Assembly: GCA_033442325.1 (NCBI GenBank)
Contig: JAWQFM010000008.1
Coordinates: 1,517,917 to 1,525,562 of the forward strand
Origin: Salpingoeca rosetta
Lineage: Eukaryota > Protista > Choanoflagellata
Length of the DNA: 7,646 nucleotides
Reading direction: 5' to 3'
Both the position numbers and the translations under genes were made by a program. How positions within the stretch are numbered: the first letter of the stretch is position 1; each line of letters begins with the position of its first letter. Of the stretch, positions 1-7,646 are shown one piece after another. Under the pieces are notes generated by a model that was not told the DNA's origin, did no database searches, and saw only the letters and a list, made by a program, of their open reading frames with translations.

Positions 1-1075
1 CCTGTCGCTCGACGATGCCATTCTGCGCCTGGGTGTACGGCGGGGACTGCTGGTGCTGCTTCAGGTGCTTCTGACGATGGCCTGGAAGTCAGCTCCGAGG
101 AAGATGGCATCGGAATCCGTCTGGAGTGCTGTTGTTGTGGGTGAGATGGGGAGCTTGGTCTCGCGCAGGAAAGACTGGAACGCGGCAACTGCGTCCTTCT
201 TGGCATTGAGATGGACTGCATGCAGGAGCTTGCTGCCCTCATCGACGATGACGAGGCTGTAGCGCTTGTCCGTGGGCGAGTCCGCGGTCCAGTCGACGAT
301 GTCGGCGTGGATGCGCTCGCCGGGCACCTGTGTGCGTTCCGCGTGCTTGCTGACGCTGTGACGAGTGCTCTTGGTCACTGCGCACGTTGTACACTGCTTG
401 CTGCTGATGGCGTTGCGATCGTCGATGCCCATCAGCTTGCAGTACTGCTGCACGTCGTTGTCGTTGCGGTGGCCAAGCACCTCATGCATCGATGGTGTCT
501 GCACCTTGCTCTGGGCTGCAGGAGCTGCTGCGTGTTGCTGTGGTTGCTTGCAGGCATCGGTGGTGAGTCCGTGTGCCGTGGATGGACCAACAGCAACAAT
601 GGGCCAGCATCGGAGGCTGCTGCGCTCCTTCAGCTTGACCTCGGCTCCGTGGCTGAAGCGCACGTAGTGCCCATCAGCGCCATCACGCTGCGAGTGGCCC
701 GTTGGCCTGCCGCTGCTGTCCCTAGTCAGACGACCGAGGGCGATGAGGTTGGCGTGGCCCTCGGGCACGTAGAGGCACTCCTGTAGCACAATCTGCATCG
801 TAGCTCCGCTCGTCGTGCGTGCATGCAACAGCACAGAGCCAACACCGCGCACGGGCACACGTGTGCCGCCAAACGCAGTGATGTGGCGTGTATGGTGCTG
901 TTGCAGGTGCGGTGACAGCTCCACGAAGGCGTCCTTGACGAAGGTGAGGTGGTGTGAAGCACCAGTGTCTGCAAGCCACGTGAGTGGGTCATGCAGCTGC
1001 GTGGTGTAGTAGCTGTGGCAGCGACGAAGGTTGCTGCGTCTTGACCATGTGATGCTGTGCCTGTGCAGTGAAGCC
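1..1075 (-). pseudogene. pol: Copy A: copia pol fragment (aspartic protease, HHCC zinc-binding region, integrase core), partial, with a 1-bp deletion near 72
   Basis: Protease motifs WLADTGASHH (949-978) and LYVPEGHANLIALGRL; HEVLGH...CTTC; integrase RIHADI and LQTDSDAIF. The sequence reads gtgcttctgacg at about 65-76 versus gtgcttcttgacg in copies B and D, shifting the frame (IVRST* instead of IVKKHLKQ). Bases 1-442 align to 7204-7646. The indel could be a sequencing error. Confidence 0.9.
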
Positions 1076-1989
1076 NNNNNNNNNNNNNNNNNNNNNNNNN
1101 NNNNNNNNNNNNNNNNNNNNNNNNNNNNNNNNNNNNNNNNNNNNNNNNNNNNNNNNNNNNNNNNNNNNNNNNNNNNNNNNNNNNNNNNNNNNNNNNNNNN
1201 NNNNNNNNNNNNNNNNNNNNNNNNNNNNNNNNNNNNNNNNNNNNNNNNNNNNNNNNNNNNNNNNNNNNNNNNNNNNNNNNNNNNNNNNNNNNNNNNNNNN
1301 NNNNNNNNNNNNNNNNNNNNNNNNNNNNNNNNNNNNNNNNNNNNNNNNNNNNNNNNNNNNNNNNNNNNNNNNNNNNNNNNNNNNNNNNNNNNNNNNNNNN
1401 NNNNNNNNNNNNNNNNNNNNNNNNNNNNNNNNNNNNNNNNNNNNNNNNNNNNNNNNNNNNNNNNNNNNNNNNNNNNNNNNNNNNNNNNNNNNNNNNNNNN
1501 NNNNNNNNNNNNNNNNNNNNNNNNNNNNNNNNNNNNNNNNNNNNNNNNNNNNNNNNNNNNNNNNNNNNNNNNNNNNNNNNNNNNNNNNNNNNNNNNNNNN
1601 NNNNNNNNNNNNNNNNNNNNNNNNNNNNNNNNNNNNNNNNNNNNNNNNNNNNNNNNNNNNNNNNNNNNNNNNNNNNNNNNNNNNNNNNNNNNNNNNNNNN
1701 NNNNNNNNNNNNNNNNNNNNNNNNNNNNNNNNNNNNNNNNNNNNNNNNNNNNNNNNNNNNNNNNNNNNNNNNNNNNNNNNNNNNNNNNNNNNNNNNNNNN
1801 NNNNNNNNNNNNNNNNNNNNNNNNNNNNNNNNNNNNNNNNNNNNNNNNNNNNNNNNNNNNNNNNNNNNNNNNNNNNNNNNNNNNNNNNNNNNNNNNNNNN
1901 NNNNNNNNNNNNNNNNNNNNNNNNNNNNNNNNNNNNNNNNNNNNNNNNNNNNNNNNNNNNNNNNNNNNNNNNNNNNNNNNNNNNNNNNN
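1076..1989. other. Assembly gap (914 N)
   Basis: Run of N. It probably holds the rest of the LTR ending at 2020 (inference). Confidence 0.99.
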
Positions 1990-2020
1990 ACACAAAACAG
2001 AAACTCACTCACTCTCAACA
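1990..2020 (-). repeat. LTR0: U3-terminal 31 bp of the 3' LTR of copy B (remainder in gap)
   Basis: acacaaaacagaaactcactcactctcaaca matches the ends of the LTRs at 5341-5371 and 6954-6984. On the minus strand it starts TGTTGAGAG directly after the PPT. Confidence 0.93.
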
Positions 2021-4402
2021 CTCCCCCTCAACTGCCTTCCTCTGCTCCGCCTCAGCCGTCGAAGTTCCCACCAGTCGTGGCAGGTGCTGCTCGAAGGTCT
2101 GCTTGTCTAGTGCCTTTGTCAGCGCGTCGGCAACCATCTGCGTGCCGGGACAGTGCTGCAGCACAATGGTTCCGTCGGCGATGAGCTCCCGCACGAAGTG
2201 GTGGCGTACCCGGATGTGCTTCGTGCGCGGCTTGGTGACGTGGTCGTTGCCGATGGCGATGGCCGCCTGGTTATCTGTCAGCATCTTGGTGGCTCCAGCC
2301 TCGGGCTCGTCGAGGTCCATGAGCAGCTGCCGCAGGAAGACGACATCCTGCGCTGCAGCGGAGATGGCCATGTACTCGGCCTCGGCGGTGCTCAGCGCAA
2401 CCGTGGGTTGCAGCCGGCTGCTCCAAGACACAAGACAGCCGTTGATGTAGCAGGTGAAGCCCGTCGTGGAGCGGCCCGTCAGCTGGTCCGTGCCGAAGCT
2501 GGCATCGCTGTAGCACACCAGGTCCAGCGGTTGGTCCTTGCGCGTGCCGCTGCGTCGCTTGAAGAGGAGGCCGTGCTCGCTCGTCGCCTTCAGGTACCGC
2601 ACGACGTGCTTGGCTGCCTGCCAGTGGACCGTCGTGTAACGGTCCATGTAACGGCAGAGCAGCCCGCACGCGAAGCTGACGTCTGGTCTCGTGCGGTTGG
2701 CCAGGTACAGGAGCGAGCCGACGAGGTTGCGGAAAGGCAAGCGTCGGTCGGGCTGCTCGCTGATGCTGGAGGCGTCGATGCCAACACGCATGGGCGTGGA
2801 CACGCTGGCTGCCGCTGCCAGGTTGTAGTCGTTGACGATGTCGTTGATGGCCTGTGTCTGCGCAATGTGCAACACCCCGTCAGCTGGTGACGTCAGGTGA
2901 AGGCCCAGGTACCAGGTGAGCGGGCCCAGGTCCTCTGCCTCGAAGCTCTCCTTGATCTGCTGCTTGCAGGCACGGATGTGGCGCTCGCTGCTGCCGCTGA
3001 TGATGAGGTCGTCGACGTACGTGATGATCCATGTGCGCTGTCCGTCGTCGTGGAGCTTGGTGAAGAGGCAAGCGTCGACGTTGCTTTGCGCCCATCCGTT
3101 GGTCTTGAGGAAGGTGTGCAGCTTCTTGGCCCATGCACGGCCAGCTTGCTTGAGGCCGTAGAGCGGCTTGAGCAGCCGGCACACCTTGCCCGCGTAGCGT
3201 TGAGCGCCGTCGCCGATGTCGGTGAAGTGCGGCGGCAGCTCCATGTACAGCTCCTCCTTGAGATCAGCCTGCAGGTAAGCCGACTTGAAGTCGAGCTGGT
3301 GCAGCTGGTGCTGTCGTTGCAGGGAGACGGCGAGCACAGTGAGGATGGTCTTGGCTGCTGGTGTTGGGGCGTAGGTCTGGTCGAAGTCGATGCCTGGTCG
3401 TTGGCTGAAGCCCTTGGCGACCCAGCGTGCCTTGAAGCGCGTCGGCGCGCCCTCAGCATCACGCTTCACCTTGAAGACCAAGCGTGACTTGAGAGGCGTG
3501 TGCTGCCGTGGCACGACGCTGCGTGGGATGAGCTTGATGACGCCGTTGCGCTCCATGGCCCCGATCTCCTCCAAGCATGCCTGAGTCCACTGCTTGCGTT
3601 GCTGGCTCTTGAGTGCCTGCTTGATGCTTGCAGGCTCCGTGAGGCTGGTGTCGTCACTGCTGCTTGCTGTGAACGCGCCTGCCTCGGTGTCGCTTGCATC
3701 TGTTGTGTCTGGATCGTAGTTGGCGTCGTTGGTGTCGCTGCTGCTGTCGTCGTCAAAGTCCGTGAGCAGGAAGTCTGTCTCGACATCATCGTCCTGGTCC
3801 TCGTCGATGTGAACTGTTGGTTGCTCACCGTCAGTGGTGCTGTTGCTGCTGTCACGTGCACTGGGAAGCTGGAGCATGGACGATGTCGTGGATGTCTGCA
3901 CTTGCTCCTCCCCCTCATCCACGACATCATCGGCCTTGGAGAAGGGAAGGAAGCGGACGTGGATGGAGGACACAACGGTGTTTGTGTCTGCGAAGTGGAC
4001 GAGGTGGCTGTTGCTGCTGCTGTTGTGGCCGACGTAGATGCCTCGACGACCCTTGGGCTGCAGGCGACCGCGCTGTGTGCTGATGTGGACGACGGCCGGC
4101 TGCCCGAAGACGTGCAGCTGCGGCACGTGCTTGGGCAGCGAGCCCGTGACAATCTGCAGCGGTGTCTTGCCGTGGAGGGAAGGGCGAGGCATGTTGTTGA
4201 GGATGTGGAGGGCGTGGTTGCAGGCGAGGCTCCAGTACGATGCGTCAAGGCCTGCACCCGTGATCATGGCTCGCACCATGTCGGAGAGGGTGCGCACCTG
4301 TCGCTCGACGATGCCGTTCTGCGCCTGGTTGTACGGCGGGGACTGCTGGTGCTGCTTCAGGTGCTTCTTGACGATGGCCTGGAAGTCAGCTCGGAGGAAG
4401 AT
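2015..4402 (-). CDS. pol: Copy B: 5'-truncated copia Pol (integrase C-half with SH3-like/GKGY region, acidic linker, reverse transcriptase, RNase H), 795 codons uninterrupted
   Basis: Integrase: QNGIVERQVR, FGQPAVVH...PKGRRGIYVGH. RT: EPASIKQAL, FKARWVAKGFSQRPGIDFDQTYAP, QLDFKSAYL, LYGLKQAGRAW, YVDD (3008-3019). RNase H: YSDASF, STAEAEY, TDNQAAI, TKHIRVRHHFVRE, ADALTKAL. It lacks HHCC and both catalytic Asp residues of the DDE triad because an LTR joins at 4402/4403. Confidence 0.95.
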   Translation of the reverse strand: MFLRADFQAIVKKHLKQHQQSPPYNQAQNGIVERQVRTLSDMVRAMITGAGLDASYWSLACNHALHILNNMPRPSLHGKTPLQIVTGSLPKHVPQLHVFGQPAVVHISTQRGRLQPKGRRGIYVGHNSSSNSHLVHFADTNTVVSSIHVRFLPFSKADDVVDEGEEQVQTSTTSSMLQLPSARDSSNSTTDGEQPTVHIDEDQDDDVETDFLLTDFDDDSSSDTNDANYDPDTTDASDTEAGAFTASSSDDTSLTEPASIKQALKSQQRKQWTQACLEEIGAMERNGVIKLIPRSVVPRQHTPLKSRLVFKVKRDAEGAPTRFKARWVAKGFSQRPGIDFDQTYAPTPAAKTILTVLAVSLQRQHQLHQLDFKSAYLQADLKEELYMELPPHFTDIGDGAQRYAGKVCRLLKPLYGLKQAGRAWAKKLHTFLKTNGWAQSNVDACLFTKLHDDGQRTWIITYVDDLIISGSSERHIRACKQQIKESFEAEDLGPLTWYLGLHLTSPADGVLHIAQTQAINDIVNDYNLAAAASVSTPMRVGIDASSISEQPDRRLPFRNLVGSLLYLANRTRPDVSFACGLLCRYMDRYTTVHWQAAKHVVRYLKATSEHGLLFKRRSGTRKDQPLDLVCYSDASFGTDQLTGRSTTGFTCYINGCLVSWSSRLQPTVALSTAEAEYMAISAAAQDVVFLRQLLMDLDEPEAGATKMLTDNQAAIAIGNDHVTKPRTKHIRVRHHFVRELIADGTIVLQHCPGTQMVADALTKALDKQTFEQHLPRLVGTSTAEAEQRKAVEGEC
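2021..2029 (-). promoter_or_regulatory. Polypurine tract (plus-strand primer) of copy B
   Basis: Minus strand GAGGGGGAG lies immediately before the LTR-initial TG. Confidence 0.9.
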
Positions 4403-4824
4403 TGTAGAAACACGACAGGTGGTGTGTGTGTTTACTGTAGGCAAACGCAACAACCAAGAACACAAGAAGAATGAACAAGCACAACAAGCTGCTGCCAAAT
4501 CAACTCGGGCAGCACGCTCAAACAAACACTAGACAAGTGCACACACAGTCAACAGAACTGCCAAGGCGACATGGGCAGAGAGTGCACGAACACAAACAAT
4601 CTAAACAACGAACAGCATGCATACATGCGCGCAGAGCAATGCTAGGCATGGCATGAATGCTTGCAGGCAAGCATACACAACAGACAACACTTCACAACAC
4701 TGCATGGCACGCACACATGGCATTTGCCAAGCATGACGGGCATGCACACACACATGGCACACATGACACACAACTCACGTGTGCAGGGGAAGGAGGAGAG
4801 GAGAGGCAGTTGGCACACATGCAT
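4403..4824 (-). repeat. LTR1: LTR with intact U5 end, truncated on the U3 side by LTR2 (about 134 bp missing)
   Basis: Starts tgtagaaacacgacagg and aligns to 4825-5237 and 6438-6850. It stops at ...cacatgcat, where intact LTRs continue accagcag. It is more diverged than LTR2/LTR3, with 9 bp of net insertion. Confidence 0.93.
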
Positions 4825-5371
4825 TGTTGAGACACGACAGGTGGTGTGTGTGTTTACTGTAGGCAAACGCAACAAACAAGAACACAAGAAGAATGAACAA
4901 GCACAACAAGCTGCTGCCAAATCAACTCGGGCAGCACGCTCAAACGAATACAAGACAAGTGCACACGGTCAATGACGCTGCCAAGGCGACATGGGCAGAG
5001 TGTGCACGAACACAAACAATCTAAACAATGAGCAGCATGCATACATGCGCGCAGAGCAGTGCTAGGCATGGCATGAATGCTTGCAGGCAAGCATACACAA
5101 CAGACAACACTTCACAACACTGCATGGCACGCAGGCATGGCATTTGCCAAGCATAACGGGCATGCACACACACACATGGCACACAACTCACGTGTGTAGG
5201 GGAAGCAGGAGAGGAGAGGCAGTTGGCACACATGCATACCAGCAGAGAGGAAGGAATGTTTGCAAACGGAAAAACCACAAAGCAGGTGTTGTTGGCAAAC
5301 AAGACAAAACCACACGCGAAGGCAAATTAGGAAGGACTTAACACAGAACAGAAACTCACTGAATCTCAACA
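4825..5371 (-). repeat. LTR2: complete 547-bp 3' LTR of copy C
   Basis: TGTTGAGA...TCTCAACA termini (8-bp perfect inverted repeat); PPT adjacent at 5372. About 10 substitutions versus 6438-6984 by manual alignment. Confidence 0.96.
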
Positions 5372-5380
5372 CTCCCCCTC
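5372..5380 (-). promoter_or_regulatory. Polypurine tract of copy C
   Basis: Minus strand GAGGGGGAG lies immediately before LTR2 and is identical to 2021-2029. Confidence 0.9.
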
Positions 5381-6022
5381 AACTGCCTTCCTCTGCTCCG
5401 TCTCAGCCGTCGAGGTTCCCACCAGTCGTGGCAGGTGCTGCTCGAAGGTCTGCTTGTCCAGTGCCTTGGTCAGCGCGTCGGCAACCATCTGCGTGCCGGG
5501 ACAGTGCTGCAGCACAATGGTTCCGTCAGCGATGAGCTCCCGCACGAAGTGGTGGCGTACCCGGATGTGCTTCGTGCGCGGCTTGGTGACGTGGTCGTTA
5601 CCGATGGCGATGGCCGCCTGGTTATCTGTCAGCATCTTGGTGGCTCCAGCCTCGGGCTCGTCAAGGTCCATGAGCAGCTGCCGCAGGAAGACGACGTCCT
5701 GCGCTGCAGCGGAGATGGCCATGTACTCGGCCTCGGCGGTGCTCAGCGCAACTGTGGGTTGCAGCCGGCTGCTCCAAGACACAAGACAGCCGTTGATGTA
5801 GCAGGTGAAGCCCGTCGTGGAGCGGCCCGTCAGCTGGTCTGTTCCGAAGCTGGCATCGCTGTAGCACACAAGGTCCAGCGGCTGGTCTTTGCACGTGCCG
5901 CTGCGTCGCTTGAAGAGGAGGCCGTGCTCGCTCGTCGCCTTCAGGTACCGCACGACGTGCTTGGCTGCCTGCCAGTGGACCGTCGTGTAACGGTCCATGT
6001 AACGGGCAGAGCAGTCCGCACG

Positions 6023-6124
6023 NNNNNNNNNNNNNNNNNNNNNNNNNNNNNNNNNNNNNNNNNNNNNNNNNNNNNNNNNNNNNNNNNNNNNNNNNNNNNN
6101 NNNNNNNNNNNNNNNNNNNNNNNN
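6023..6124. other. Assembly gap (102 N)
   Basis: Run of N. Its length equals the homologous interval 2671-2772 of copy B (102 bp). Confidence 0.99.
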
Positions 6125-6437
6125 CGTCGATGCCAACACGCATGGGCGTCGATCACGCTGACTGCCGATGTCAAGGTTGTAGTCGGTGGACGATGTCGTT
6201 GATGGACCTGTGTCTGCGTAATGTGCAACACCCCGTCAACTGGTGACGTCAGGTGACAGGCCCAGGTACCATGGTGAGCGGGCCCAGGTCCTCCTGCCTC
6301 GAAGCTGTCCTTGATCTGCTGCTTGCAGGCACGGATGTGGCGCTCGCTGCTGCCGCTGATGATGAGGTCGTCGACGTACGTGATGATTCATGTGCGCTGT
6401 CGGTCGTCGTGGAGCTTGGCGAAGAGCCATGCGTCGA

Positions 6438-6984
6438 TGTAGAAACACGACAGGTGGTGTGTGTGTTTACTGTAGACAAACGCAACAAACAAGAACACAA
6501 GGAGAATGAACAAGCACAACAAGCTGCTGCCAAATCAACTCGGGCAGCACGCTCAAACGAATACAAGACAAGTGCACACGGTCAATGACGCTGCCAAGGC
6601 GACATGGGCAGAGTGTGCACGAACACAAACAATCTAAACAATGAGCAGCATGCATACATGCGCGCAGAGCAGTGCTAGGCATGGCATGGATGCTTGCAGG
6701 CAAGCATACACAACAGACAACACTTCACAACACTGCATGGCATGCAGGCATGGCATTTGCCAAGCATGGCGAGCATGCACACACACACATGGCACACAAC
6801 TCACGTGTGTAGGGGAAGCAGGAGAGGAGAGGCAGTTGGCACACATGCATACCAGCAGAGAGGAAGGAATGTTTGCAAACGGAAAAACCACAAAGCAGGT
6901 GTTGTTGGCAAACAAGACAAAACCACACGCGAAGGCAAATTAGGAAGGACTTAACACAGAACAGAAACTCACTGACTCTCAACA
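6438..6984 (-). repeat. LTR3: complete 547-bp LTR with neither PBS nor PPT, flanked on both sides by pol sequence
   Basis: TGTAGAAA...TCTCAACA termini. The left flank is RT (gcgtcga, equivalent to 3078) and the right flank is integrase C-terminal domain (tgctgatg, equivalent to 4078). Confidence 0.96.
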
Positions 6985-7646
6985 TGCTGATGTGGACGAC
7001 GGCCGGCTGCCCGAAGATGTGCAGCTGCGGCACGTGCTTGGGCAGCGAGCCCGTGACAATCTGCAGCGGTGTCTTGCCGTGGAGGGAAGGGCGAGGCATG
7101 TTGTTGAGGATGTGCAGGGCGTGGTTGCAGGCGAGACTCCAGTACGATGCGTCGAGGCCTGCACCCGTGATCATGGCTCGCACCATGTCGGAGAGGGTGC
7201 GCACCTGTCGCTCGACGATGCCGTTCTGCGCCTGGGTGTACGGCGGGGACTGCTGGTGCTGCTTCAGGTGCTTCTTGACGATGGCCTGGAAGTCAGCTCC
7301 GAGGAAGATGGCATCGGAATCCGTCTGGAGTGCTGTTGTTGTGGGCGAGATGGGGAGCTTGGTCTCGCGCAGGAAAGACTGGAACGCGGCAACTGCGTCC
7401 TTCTTGGCGTTGAGATGGACTGCATGCAGGAGCTTGCTTCCCTCATCGACGATGACGAGGCTGTAGCGCTTGCCCGTGGGTGAGTCCGCGGTCCAGTCGA
7501 CGATGTCGGCGTGGATGCGCTCGCCGGGCACCTGTGTGCGCTCCGCGTGCTTGCTGACGCTGTGACGAGTGCTCTTGGTCACTGCGCACGTTGTACACTG
7601 CTTGCTGCTGATGGCGTTGCGATCGTCGATGCCCATCAGCTTGCAG
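6985..7646 (-). CDS. pol: Copy D: copia integrase (CxxC of HHCC, complete D,D(35)E core), partial at the window edge and cut by LTR3 in the C-terminal domain
   Basis: Motifs CTTC, RIHADI, LQTDSDAIF and QNGIVER, with 35 residues between the second Asp and the Glu. The frame is open and runs on into LTR3 after ...AVVHIS. Confidence 0.92.

Follow-up and report, generated by a model that had tools for sequence, protein, structure and literature searches.

Retrotransposon clusters confined to centromeres are known from Cryptococcus (Tcn1-6), Phytophthora sojae (the copia-like CoLT), Dictyostelium (DIRS-1) and green algae (Zepp-like LINEs). Heterochromatin is the destination of the copia-type Ty5 of Saccharomyces, whose integrase C-terminus binds Sir4. 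Autointegration products of retroviruses and Ty1, and tandem arrays of Ty1, are known as well. A copia centromeric retrotransposon is reported from Ganoderma (PMC10817607). From Salpingoeca rosetta, Southworth et al. 2019 (PMC6875170) reported the active Ty1/copia retrotransposon Srospv2 (Salpingoeca rosetta pseudovirus-2), for which the accessible part of that paper gives a length of 5452 bases, an LTR of about 554 bases, a 5 bp target duplication, a codon usage analysis and a count of 41 full-length, 4 solo and 26 truncated copies. Term searches of that part of the text return no mention of centromeres, nested copies or islands.

The window analysed here, a stretch of 7,646 nucleotides on S. 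rosetta scaffold C8, is made of this element. Annotation against Srospv2 accounts for 6630 of its 6630 non-N bases, which bears out an initial annotation that had seen no non-element DNA, and all pieces have their coding strand on the minus strand (Table 1). Pfam places Pol_BBD at w64-1074 (w denotes window positions), SH3_retrovirus followed by RVT_2 at w2018-4402 on the minus strand, and rve at w6986-7636. The element thus has the RVT_2-type reverse transcriptase, and the integrase ahead of it in the polyprotein, that characterize Ty1/copia. Its TG...CA LTR has short inverted termini (TGTTGAGA...TCTCAACA; the majority variant begins TGTAGAAA). The supplement of PMC6875170 contains the LTR terminal string as well as variants specific to single copies, and individual LTR copies of the genome correspond to LTR rows in its published alignments. 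Elements of about 5440-5460 bases in the present genome, against the published 5452, are the same element.

Table 1. Features of the window. Pieces used as mapping references are LTR = w4825-5371, IA = w2021-4402 and IB = w106-1075 (IA and IB internal).
Feature	Position	Strand	Remarks
Srospv2 internal, integrase core towards protease and beta-barrel (gag side)	1..1075	-	IA2277-2382 + IB1-970; Pol_BBD
Assembly gap, 914 N	1076..1989	.	
Last 31 bases of LTR (U3 start, coding sense), then normal PPT-side internal	1990..2020	-	C8:1519915 end then CTCCCCCTCAACT
Internal IA1-2382, target of junction 1	2021..4402	-	open frame, 795 codons
Junction 1: LTR U5 end (TGTAGAAA...) to integrase core at IA2382, co-oriented	4402..4403	-	flank ...AAGAT
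LTR positions 1-413, older subtype, interrupted by junction 2	4403..4824	-	93% identical to next LTR
Junction 2: young LTR U5 end (TGTTGAGA...) into older LTR position 413, co-oriented	4824..4825	-	flank ...TGCAT
Full LTR, 547 bases, young subtype	4825..5371	-	
Internal IA1-650, RNase H end	5372..6022	-	open frame, protein 99% identical to intact copy
Assembly gap, 102 N	6023..6124	.	
Internal IA753-1061, RT	6125..6437	-	7 single-base insertions + 13 mismatches
Junction 3: LTR U5 end to RT at IA1061, co-oriented	6437..6438	-	flank ...GTCGA
Full LTR, 98% identical to LTR 4825-5371, private differences	6438..6984	-	
Junction 4: LTR U3 end to integrase SH3-like domain, IA2058, co-oriented	6984..6985	-	flank TGCTG...
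Internal IA2058 to IB337, integrase	6985..7646	-	662/662 bases identical to C1 locus

Four LTR ends abut sequence of the same family exactly at their TG/CA termini, at the coordinates first described and all co-oriented with their targets. The joined domains are likewise as first named, with w4402 in the rve core, w6437 in RVT_2 and w6985 in the SH3-like C-terminal domain of the integrase by Pfam. The LTRs start with TGTAGAAA or TGTTGAGA and end with CTCAACA, and the same termini occur at about 56 and 59 other genomic LTR ends. The junctions fall exactly at canonical LTR termini and are of the integrase type, joining one copia family to itself. At 4825 a young LTR lies inside the older LTR at 4403, a chronology that fits nesting. 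Published LTR 3_ATCTT shares private variants of the LTR at junction 1; published rows 5_ATGCA and 3_ATGCA, whose 5-base flank label is shared by both ends, open with sequence from the U3 side of the LTR at 4825. This LTR, together with 250 bases of the adjoining internal sequence (w5372-5621), matches C1:1197216 at 796 of 797 bases. The flanks of the LTR at 6438-6984 differ (GTCGA left, TGCTG right), which rules out insertion of a simple solo LTR; the right-hand join, junction 4, recurs at C1:1194244, and the left-hand flank is not among the published LTR labels. Because partner ends for junctions 1-3 are absent from the assembly, we infer the nesting of particular copies at these sites.

The quality of the pieces is uneven. 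The first is broken in frame by a 1-base deletion near w72 relative to other copies, with a stop at w61-63 and with repeat families D6 and D9 offset from each other by 1 base. The gap that follows it would span about 1506 bases at a normal element end (990 for the gag/PBS piece, then LTR 1-516); its 914 N are therefore an underestimate, or some other join may lie there. The piece at 2021..4402 runs from the RNase H side through RVT_2 and the SH3-like C-terminal domain of integrase into the integrase core, which it covers in part. The final 18 bases of the piece at 5372..6022, ahead of the second gap, are degraded. This gap is collinear, with IA650 on its left, IA753 on its right and 102 N for 102 missing bases; the reading frame is broken across it, being open on the left and switching repeatedly on the right. 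In the piece at 6125..6437 all 7 insertions are no more than about 180 bases from the gap, and the piece therefore probably rests on the low-quality tail of a single read. The last piece runs up to a contig end, beyond which 2761 N follow.

The gaps, the low-quality read tail and 827 bases that scaffold C1 repeats identically make the order of the pieces insecure and cast doubt on whether the four junctions are contiguous. It is quite possible, if somewhat short of an even chance, that the scaffold is a pastiche here, built from genuine junction reads in an order and adjacency that are not genuine. The contig w6125-7646, which carries junctions 3 and 4, sits between two gaps and opens with the poor read tail, would then combine junction 3, from a local read, with junction 4, from a C1 read, bridged by the final 165 bases of the LTR, which are almost invariant and identical to those of the LTR at C1:1194244. 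Starting at LTR position 383, the 827 bases that lead up to the contig end (about one Sanger read) are those of C1:1194244, the remainder of the LTR differs from the C1 copy at 28 positions, and the sole published LTR with the junction 4 flank (5_CAGCA) has the C1 sequence, not that of the window. Junction 3 is missing from the published set, and another identical junction is common to two scaffolds (C8:1503220 and C29:66940). Junctions 1 and 2, however, are only 422 bases apart within a clean 4-kb contig and have flanks that agree with published LTR rows, the LTR at 6438 carries private variants absent from every other copy examined, and the exact collinearity of the 102-N gap also speaks for the scaffold. 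Recombination between co-oriented copies would be expected to give the same picture. The island coordinates mark where the current reference has collapsed and is not to be trusted for structure.

Elsewhere in the genome, integrase-made nesting is real, with full-length elements, 5-bp target duplications and both orientations; the four window junctions, at which no such duplication could be demonstrated, would offer a one-sided view of such events. On C17, a 5461-base element (C17:710661-716121) lies within a co-oriented copy at IA1886-1890 with the target duplication TCCTC. The C9 element, whose LTRs are identical at 560 of 560 bases, is inserted into another copia with the duplication AACGC, and C18 has a solo LTR with the duplication CAGGA inside Srospv3. 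The element at C10:771387-776826 is inside an inverted copy, with collinear flanks IC544 and IC547 and the duplication CCAAA/CCAAG; as its two LTRs are just 95.5% identical, this copy is old, recombinant or a mosaic consensus.

At the scaffold level, about 31 of the 34 largest scaffolds carry Srospv2, together with Srospv3, in one island each, of no more than about 45 kb (S. rosetta has n = 36); the initial annotation had proposed checking for clusters about once per chromosome. Single islands are found on C1-C14, C16-C21 and C23-C34, and five secondary sites exist; the scaffold-level search saw no copia island on C15 and C22. The family is confined to these clusters: 57 of 59 intact U3-side LTR ends lie in islands and 2 outside the main islands, with 0 matches to a control pattern, while gypsy-type elements, which served as a control, are mostly dispersed, with only some 8 of their 27 RT copies in or near islands. 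Srospv3 lies ≤30 kb from Srospv2 on about 20 scaffolds, and ordinary genes start 3 kb past the island edge. A useful by-product is the map: on nearly all large scaffolds the two copia families, which are unrelated, occupy the same single small island. H3K27me3 on both families has been reported (PMC12572184).

We consider it probable that the window is part of a Srospv2 nest inside a copia island, made by chromatin-directed integration into older copies. The Srospv2 integrase would be directed not to a DNA sequence but to a chromatin feature of the islands, for which centromeric chromatin and H3K27me3-type repressed chromatin are candidates. With islands made mostly of Srospv2 and Srospv3, new copies would fall into older ones and leave exact TG/CA joins and 5-bp target duplications in either orientation, and the four co-oriented joins of the window would represent three or four such events with one side visible. 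The rest of the nested elements, which are 97-100% mutually identical, would have been collapsed or lost in the gap-ridden Sanger assembly. Recombination between co-oriented copies may also have excised them in the genome, and either process would account for the non-matching flanks of the LTR at 6438-6984. Such a mechanism would resemble that of Ty5, likewise copia-type, in that a chromatin domain and not a DNA sequence sets the insertion sites. In contrast to Ty5, no targeting motif is identified in the Srospv2 integrase, where Pfam finds only the rve core and the SH3-like domain.

The chromatin feature would be centromeric if the Srospv2/Srospv3 islands were regional centromeres and both families were held there by integrase tethering to centromeric chromatin, a proposal that we put forward tentatively. 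The centromere-type array suggested by the initial annotation gains support from the single island per large scaffold and from the confinement of the families. As in the centromere-confined clusters of other organisms, the islands occur once per chromosome-sized scaffold, are nested, mostly family-restricted and flanked by ordinary genes; unlike them, they are small (at most about 45 kb assembled), and two chromosome-scale contact map studies of S. rosetta (Hi-C and Micro-C) report no centromere clustering signal. Our literature search found no paper mapping S. rosetta centromeres. Since the islands occur about once per chromosome-sized scaffold they are candidate centromeres of a model organism for animal origins, and their coordinates make the question directly testable.

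Confinement to islands could also arise by selection, if Srospv2 integrated randomly and only copies in gene-free islands survived. The genome is gene-dense, with ordinary genes within 3 kb of the island edge, and S. rosetta cells are mostly haploid, so that gene insertions would be quickly removed. We nevertheless regard this explanation as unlikely: the C9 copy with identical LTRs is already in an island, as are paralogues that are nearly identical from one scaffold to another, gypsy-type elements survive in many scattered places, and so few Srospv2 LTR ends lie beyond the main islands.

Chromatin-directed nesting also has to be weighed against an origin from circles, in which integrase puts the cDNA ends into the element's own body (autointegration) and the resulting circles of one LTR plus the 3′ half enter the genome via homologous recombination, giving chains of the form LTR - (PPT side to site x) - LTR. 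The window can be read as LTR + IA1-2382 + LTR, then LTR + IA1-1061 + LTR, without PBS or gag pieces and without partner ends at junctions 1-3, and U5-end joins are co-oriented in 9 cases versus 4 anti-oriented. Precise joining of LTR termini to internal sites of the same family is shared with autointegration products and Ty1 arrays, as are the tandem units of contig C46, where two units of LTR + IA + IB1-823 repeat the same junction with LTRs 99% identical. C46-type units, however, also result without circles when a co-oriented insert and its target undergo unequal exchange, and repeat collapse in the assembly alone would hide partner ends. Unlike autointegration products or Ty1 arrays, junction 2 joins two LTR subtypes, which at only 93% identity belong to different molecules, and several nested copies, among them full-length elements in both orientations, show split targets and target duplications. 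Taken with these observations, the circle-based explanation is quite improbable.

The four-of-four co-orientation in the window had been attributed to strand-biased self-targeting or to selective retention of co-oriented copies, which is now very hard to credit, as a genome-wide census finds 8 co-oriented and 9 anti-oriented self-junction events outside the window (binomial p = 1; 13 and 9 with the window included, p = 0.52) and as the many Srospv2 insertions in Srospv3 and other copia-like elements face both ways. The stack itself is ordinary nested LTR-retrotransposon biology, and the apparent strand rule dissolves on a whole-genome count. The proposed preference for the family's own sequence is not supported by the flanks that could be read: about 40% of non-canonical LTR flanks are Srospv2 (many are Srospv3 and about 10 are unreadable), against 57-87% Srospv2 in the resolved island DNA near the window. 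The island sequence analysed leaves out about 18 kb, made up of C8:1510001-1517916 (the 7.9 kb that directly precede the window) and C8:1530001-1540000 (10 kb, beginning 4.4 kb after the window ends). With insertions also in Srospv3 and an island this rich in Srospv2, own-sequence targeting is not needed. One of the anti-oriented self-junctions, at C8:1541988, lies in the same island as the window.

The window (C8:1517917-1525562 of the 55.4-Mb, 68-piece source assembly) encodes a Ty1/copia polyprotein on its minus strand, and the Pfam domains of this polyprotein (rve, the SH3-like integrase C-terminal domain, RVT_2 and Pol beta-barrel) agree with those that the initial annotation had placed at the junctions. 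The terminal string of the window LTRs is present in the published sequence of Srospv2, and two published LTR alignment rows, which are labelled by LTR end and 5-base flank, match copy-specific variants of LTRs in the genome (PMC6875170); this identifies the organism as S. rosetta and the family as one already known. Southworth et al. (2019, PMC6875170) describe Srospv2, "Salpingoeca rosetta pseudovirus-2", as an element of 5452 bases that has 554-base LTRs, makes a 5-bp target duplication and is present in 71 copies. The Srospv2 nest thus combines an already described element with an arrangement of a familiar type.

Natural copies served as rulers for mapping the window: the LTR at w4825-5371 (w, window position), and the internal rulers IA at w2021-4402 (PPT side to integrase core), IB at w106-1075 and IC at L032:7123-8112 (gag to PBS; L032 and L033 are resolved stretches around the window). 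Srospv2 accounts for all 6630 of the 6630 read bases, with every piece in one direction, and the joins at 4402/4403, 4824/4825, 6437/6438 and 6984/6985 (junctions 1-4) coincide exactly with the termini that all other LTR copies share (CTCAACA and, opposite it, either TGTAGAAA or TGTTGAGA). The mapping thus bears out four exact, co-oriented LTR-end joins in a window that holds no non-element DNA, as had been read from the sequence. The U5 end is dimorphic genome-wide, about 36 copies beginning with TGTAGAAA and 16 with TGTTGAGA, and only the TGTTGAGA variant forms a perfect 8-base inverted repeat with the opposite LTR end; the window LTRs start at this dimorphic site at w4403-4410, 4825-4832 and 6438-6445. 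Compared with the copies at 4357-4369 and 7264-7276, the leftmost copy lacks 1 base (w61-72), resulting in a stop at w61-63 in the integrase frame.

Pieces of the window, retroelement islands, secondary sites and self-junctions. LTR and internal pieces were placed by ruler mapping; co- and anti-oriented are relative to the same-family target.
Feature	Location	Strand or orientation	Content
Window piece	w1-1075	minus	internal IA2277-2382 + IB1-970
Window gap	w1076-1989		914 N
Window piece	w1990-2020	minus	LTR 517-547
Window piece	w2021-4402	minus	internal IA1-2382
Window piece	w4403-4824	minus	LTR 1-413
Window piece	w4825-5371	minus	LTR 1-547
Window piece	w5372-6022	minus	internal IA1-650
Window gap	w6023-6124		102 N
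Window piece	w6125-6437	minus	internal IA753-1061
Window piece	w6438-6984	minus	LTR 1-547
Window piece	w6985-7646	minus	internal IA2058 to IB337
Island	C1: 1.174-1.200 Mb		
Island	C2: 1.965-1.985 Mb		
Island	C4: 1.155-1.182 Mb		
Island	C8: 1.498-1.543 Mb		contains the window
Island	C10: 0.766-0.794 Mb		
Island	C17: 0.711-0.719 Mb		
Island	C20: 1.190-1.212 Mb		
Island	C23: 0.480-0.509 Mb		
Secondary site	C1:3204344-3208649 (3.20 Mb)		Srospv3
Secondary site	C3:2150837 (2.15 Mb)		Srospv3
Secondary site	C4:1445000-1451918 (1.45 Mb)		Srospv3
Secondary site	C12:1373526 (1.37 Mb)		Srospv3
Secondary site	C18:722994 (0.72 Mb)		Srospv3
Self-junction	C1:1177194	co-oriented	LTR356
Self-junction	C20:1212081	co-oriented	LTR453
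Self-junction	C6:1219922	co-oriented	LTR478
Self-junction	C20:1210009	co-oriented	IC252
Self-junction	C24:1185791	co-oriented	IA33
Self-junction	C10:793530	co-oriented	LTR112
Self-junction	C46	co-oriented	IB823, present twice
Self-junction	C17	co-oriented	IA1886-1890
Self-junction	C1:1199473	anti-oriented	
Self-junction	C10:778342	anti-oriented	
Self-junction	C19:875840	anti-oriented	
Self-junction	C13:180165	anti-oriented	
Self-junction	C11:954314	anti-oriented	
Self-junction	C1:1174484	anti-oriented	
Self-junction	C4:1182186	anti-oriented	
Self-junction	C10:771387-776826	anti-oriented	element
Self-junction	C8:1541975	anti-oriented	same island as the window

The exact order of the pieces in the stack is unreliable. 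Junctions 1 and 2 lie 422 bases apart inside a clean 4-kb contig, and their flanks match published LTR rows: row 3_ATCTT, there a complete LTR, shares the private variants of the w4403 copy, and the pair 5_ATGCA/3_ATGCA, which carries the identical 5-base flank label at both ends, has at its start the U3-side sequence of the w4825 LTR. It follows from these matches that the interrupted LTR has a right half and the inserted element a far end; the assembly lacks both. None of the 59 intact LTR ends is a partner end of the kind that simple nested insertion would give at junctions 1-3 (an LTR end followed by AAGAT.., TGCAT.. or GTCGA..), but so many gaps run through the island that this absence says nothing either way.

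A 1.5-kb contig with a gap on either side carries junctions 3 and 4, and a likely explanation for these two is a pastiche of junction contigs. The 827 bases that run from LTR position 383 to the end of the contig, junction included, are identical to the locus C1:1194244; the remainder of the LTR at w6438-6984 differs from the C1 LTR at 28 positions, the sole published LTR with that flank (5_CAGCA) carries the C1 sequence, and junction 3 was not found among the published Srospv2 LTR rows. A one-read mis-join at the conserved end of this LTR is possible, and either one mis-joined read or recombination between two co-oriented LTRs would explain the C1-identical stretch. The differing flanks of this LTR (GTCGA vs TGCTG) rule out a plain solo insertion, and its private variants exclude a simple chimera between the w4825 LTR and the C1 copy. 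Besides this IA2058 junction (window 6984/6985), a second is common to two scaffolds, namely C8:1503220 and C29:66940 (Srospv2 in Srospv3, same 19-base flank); such sharing reflects islands that exchanged or duplicated sequence, or an assembler that split reads between scaffolds.

The flanks of the gap at 6023-6124 are collinear (IA650 on the left, IA753 on the right), its 102 N standing for 102 missing bases, and the reading frame is discontinuous across it. To its left the frame stays open, with 99% identity to the intact copy. To its right, seven single-base insertions, none more than about 180 bases from the gap, throw the sequence from frame to frame; the adjacent LTR aligns gaplessly to that at w4825-5371 with 98% identity. 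The insertions look like the mark of a poor read tail rather than of an old copy.

Arrays derived from circular copies are a possible but unneeded explanation of the stack, and are excluded for junction 2. The small unplaced contig C46 (1-6062) contains, in tandem, two units of LTR + IA + IB1-823, in which the IB823|LTR junction is present twice and the two LTRs are 99% identical; unequal exchange or a multimer derived from a circle could be the source of the units, which are compatible with unequal exchange between a target and its co-oriented insert.

On any given scaffold, Srospv2 matches are confined to one interval, or island, of at most about 45 kb, and 57 of the 59 intact LTR ends fall inside these intervals (a reversed-pattern control gave 0 matches). 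A second copia family, Srospv3, has no DNA similarity to Srospv2, lies within 30 kb of it on about 20 scaffolds and revealed the islands on C14, C16, C28 and C34; between them, the two families place a single island on each of C1-C14, C16-C21 and C23-C34. At the scaffold level this supports about one cluster per chromosome. No island was detected on C15 or C22, where an exact Srospv3 pattern search added none, and five secondary Srospv3 sites lie far from the main island. These sites, one of which also has gypsy-type RT or Srospv2, could be dispersed copies or scaffold joins of two chromosomes. About 31 main islands and 5 secondary sites make about 36, which equals n and is so far a numerical coincidence only. 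Gypsy-type RT (RVT_1) copies served as a control: of 27, only about 8 are in or close to islands, and most of the type is dispersed; copies inside copia islands occur at C7:1711674-1716896, C32:711752-727874 and C11:946545. Beyond the last LTR of the C8 island, ordinary genes start after 3 kb, encoding a kinase and an EH-domain protein; the left edge of this island is undefined, C8:1480001-1490000 (28 kb left of the window) being entirely N and perhaps a very large gap.

S. rosetta has 36 chromosomes, and its old scaffolds are nearly chromosome-scale; Hi-C located centromeres in Capsaspora and Creolimax, not in S. rosetta (PMC10232365), and Micro-C of S. rosetta reported telomere clustering only (PMC12221973). 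Both Srospv2 and Srospv3 are covered by H3K27me3 (PMC12572184). Literature term searches for S. rosetta centromeres, islands or copy nesting found no relevant paper. As a pointer to the so far unmapped centromeres of this choanoflagellate, the map of the islands is worth pursuing.

Flanks other than Srospv2 are mostly copia-like elements of 27-45% protein identity, in both orientations, the commonest being Srospv3, recognised by peptides in the PMC6875170 supplement. Srospv2 itself makes up about 40% of non-canonical flanks, with about 10 LTR flanks unclassified, and 57% (L032) and 87% (L033) of the resolved DNA around the window, so that own-sequence flanks are no more frequent than random insertion within an island gives. 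The proposed preference of the family for its own copies is not supported; the island is a more probable insertion target than the family sequence. Targeting of tRNA genes was rejected, as none lies in or beside the islands examined. Recurring insertion sites suggest local hot spots inside islands: three separate Srospv2 insertions (C23:508895, C23:483677 and C30:367837) fall within about 20 bases of one another in the Srospv3 gag stretch encoding NHGNGNGKRPG, LTR 409-413 was targeted twice (co-oriented at window 4824/4825, inverted at C13:180165), and IB129 and IB149 were each hit once.

Ty5 is tethered to heterochromatin, and on this model the Srospv2 integrase may be tethered to a chromatin feature of the island, so that new copies would land in older ones and pile up. 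Near-identical nest interiors would then be collapsed by Sanger assembly or deleted via exchange between co-oriented copies, and the remainder would be a string of one-sided junctions resembling a co-oriented stack. Two copia families are confined to one island per scaffold, and very young copies are already inside islands. Pure selective retention, by which copies would merely persist in islands, is less likely in view of these young copies and of the dispersed gypsy elements.

True nested integration of Srospv2 is demonstrated elsewhere in the genome, where integrase-type joins with 5-bp duplications occur in both orientations: (i) on C17, a 5461-base element (710661-716121) lies within a co-oriented copy, with the duplication TCCTC; (ii) on C10, an element lies within an inverted copy whose flanks are collinear at IC544 and IC547; (iii) on C9, an element flanked by the duplication AACGC, whose LTRs agree at 560 of 560 bases, is nested in another copia; and (iv) on C18, a solo LTR with the duplication CAGGA is nested in Srospv3. 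LTR copies were classified by their flanking sequence and all remaining ends by short flanks from pattern searches. With some classifications made by eye from 13-19 bases, self-junction events outside the window number 8 co-oriented vs 9 anti-oriented (p = 1), and 13 vs 9 once those of the window are added (p = 0.52). This census contradicts strand-biased self-targeting, which the uniform direction of the window had suggested; there is no strand rule, and co-orientation in the window is chance. The C10 element is seemingly a single full-length copy, and its target flanks are collinear, yet the two LTRs belong to different subtypes and share only 95.5% identity, a mismatch that could come from gene conversion, recombination or a mosaic consensus.
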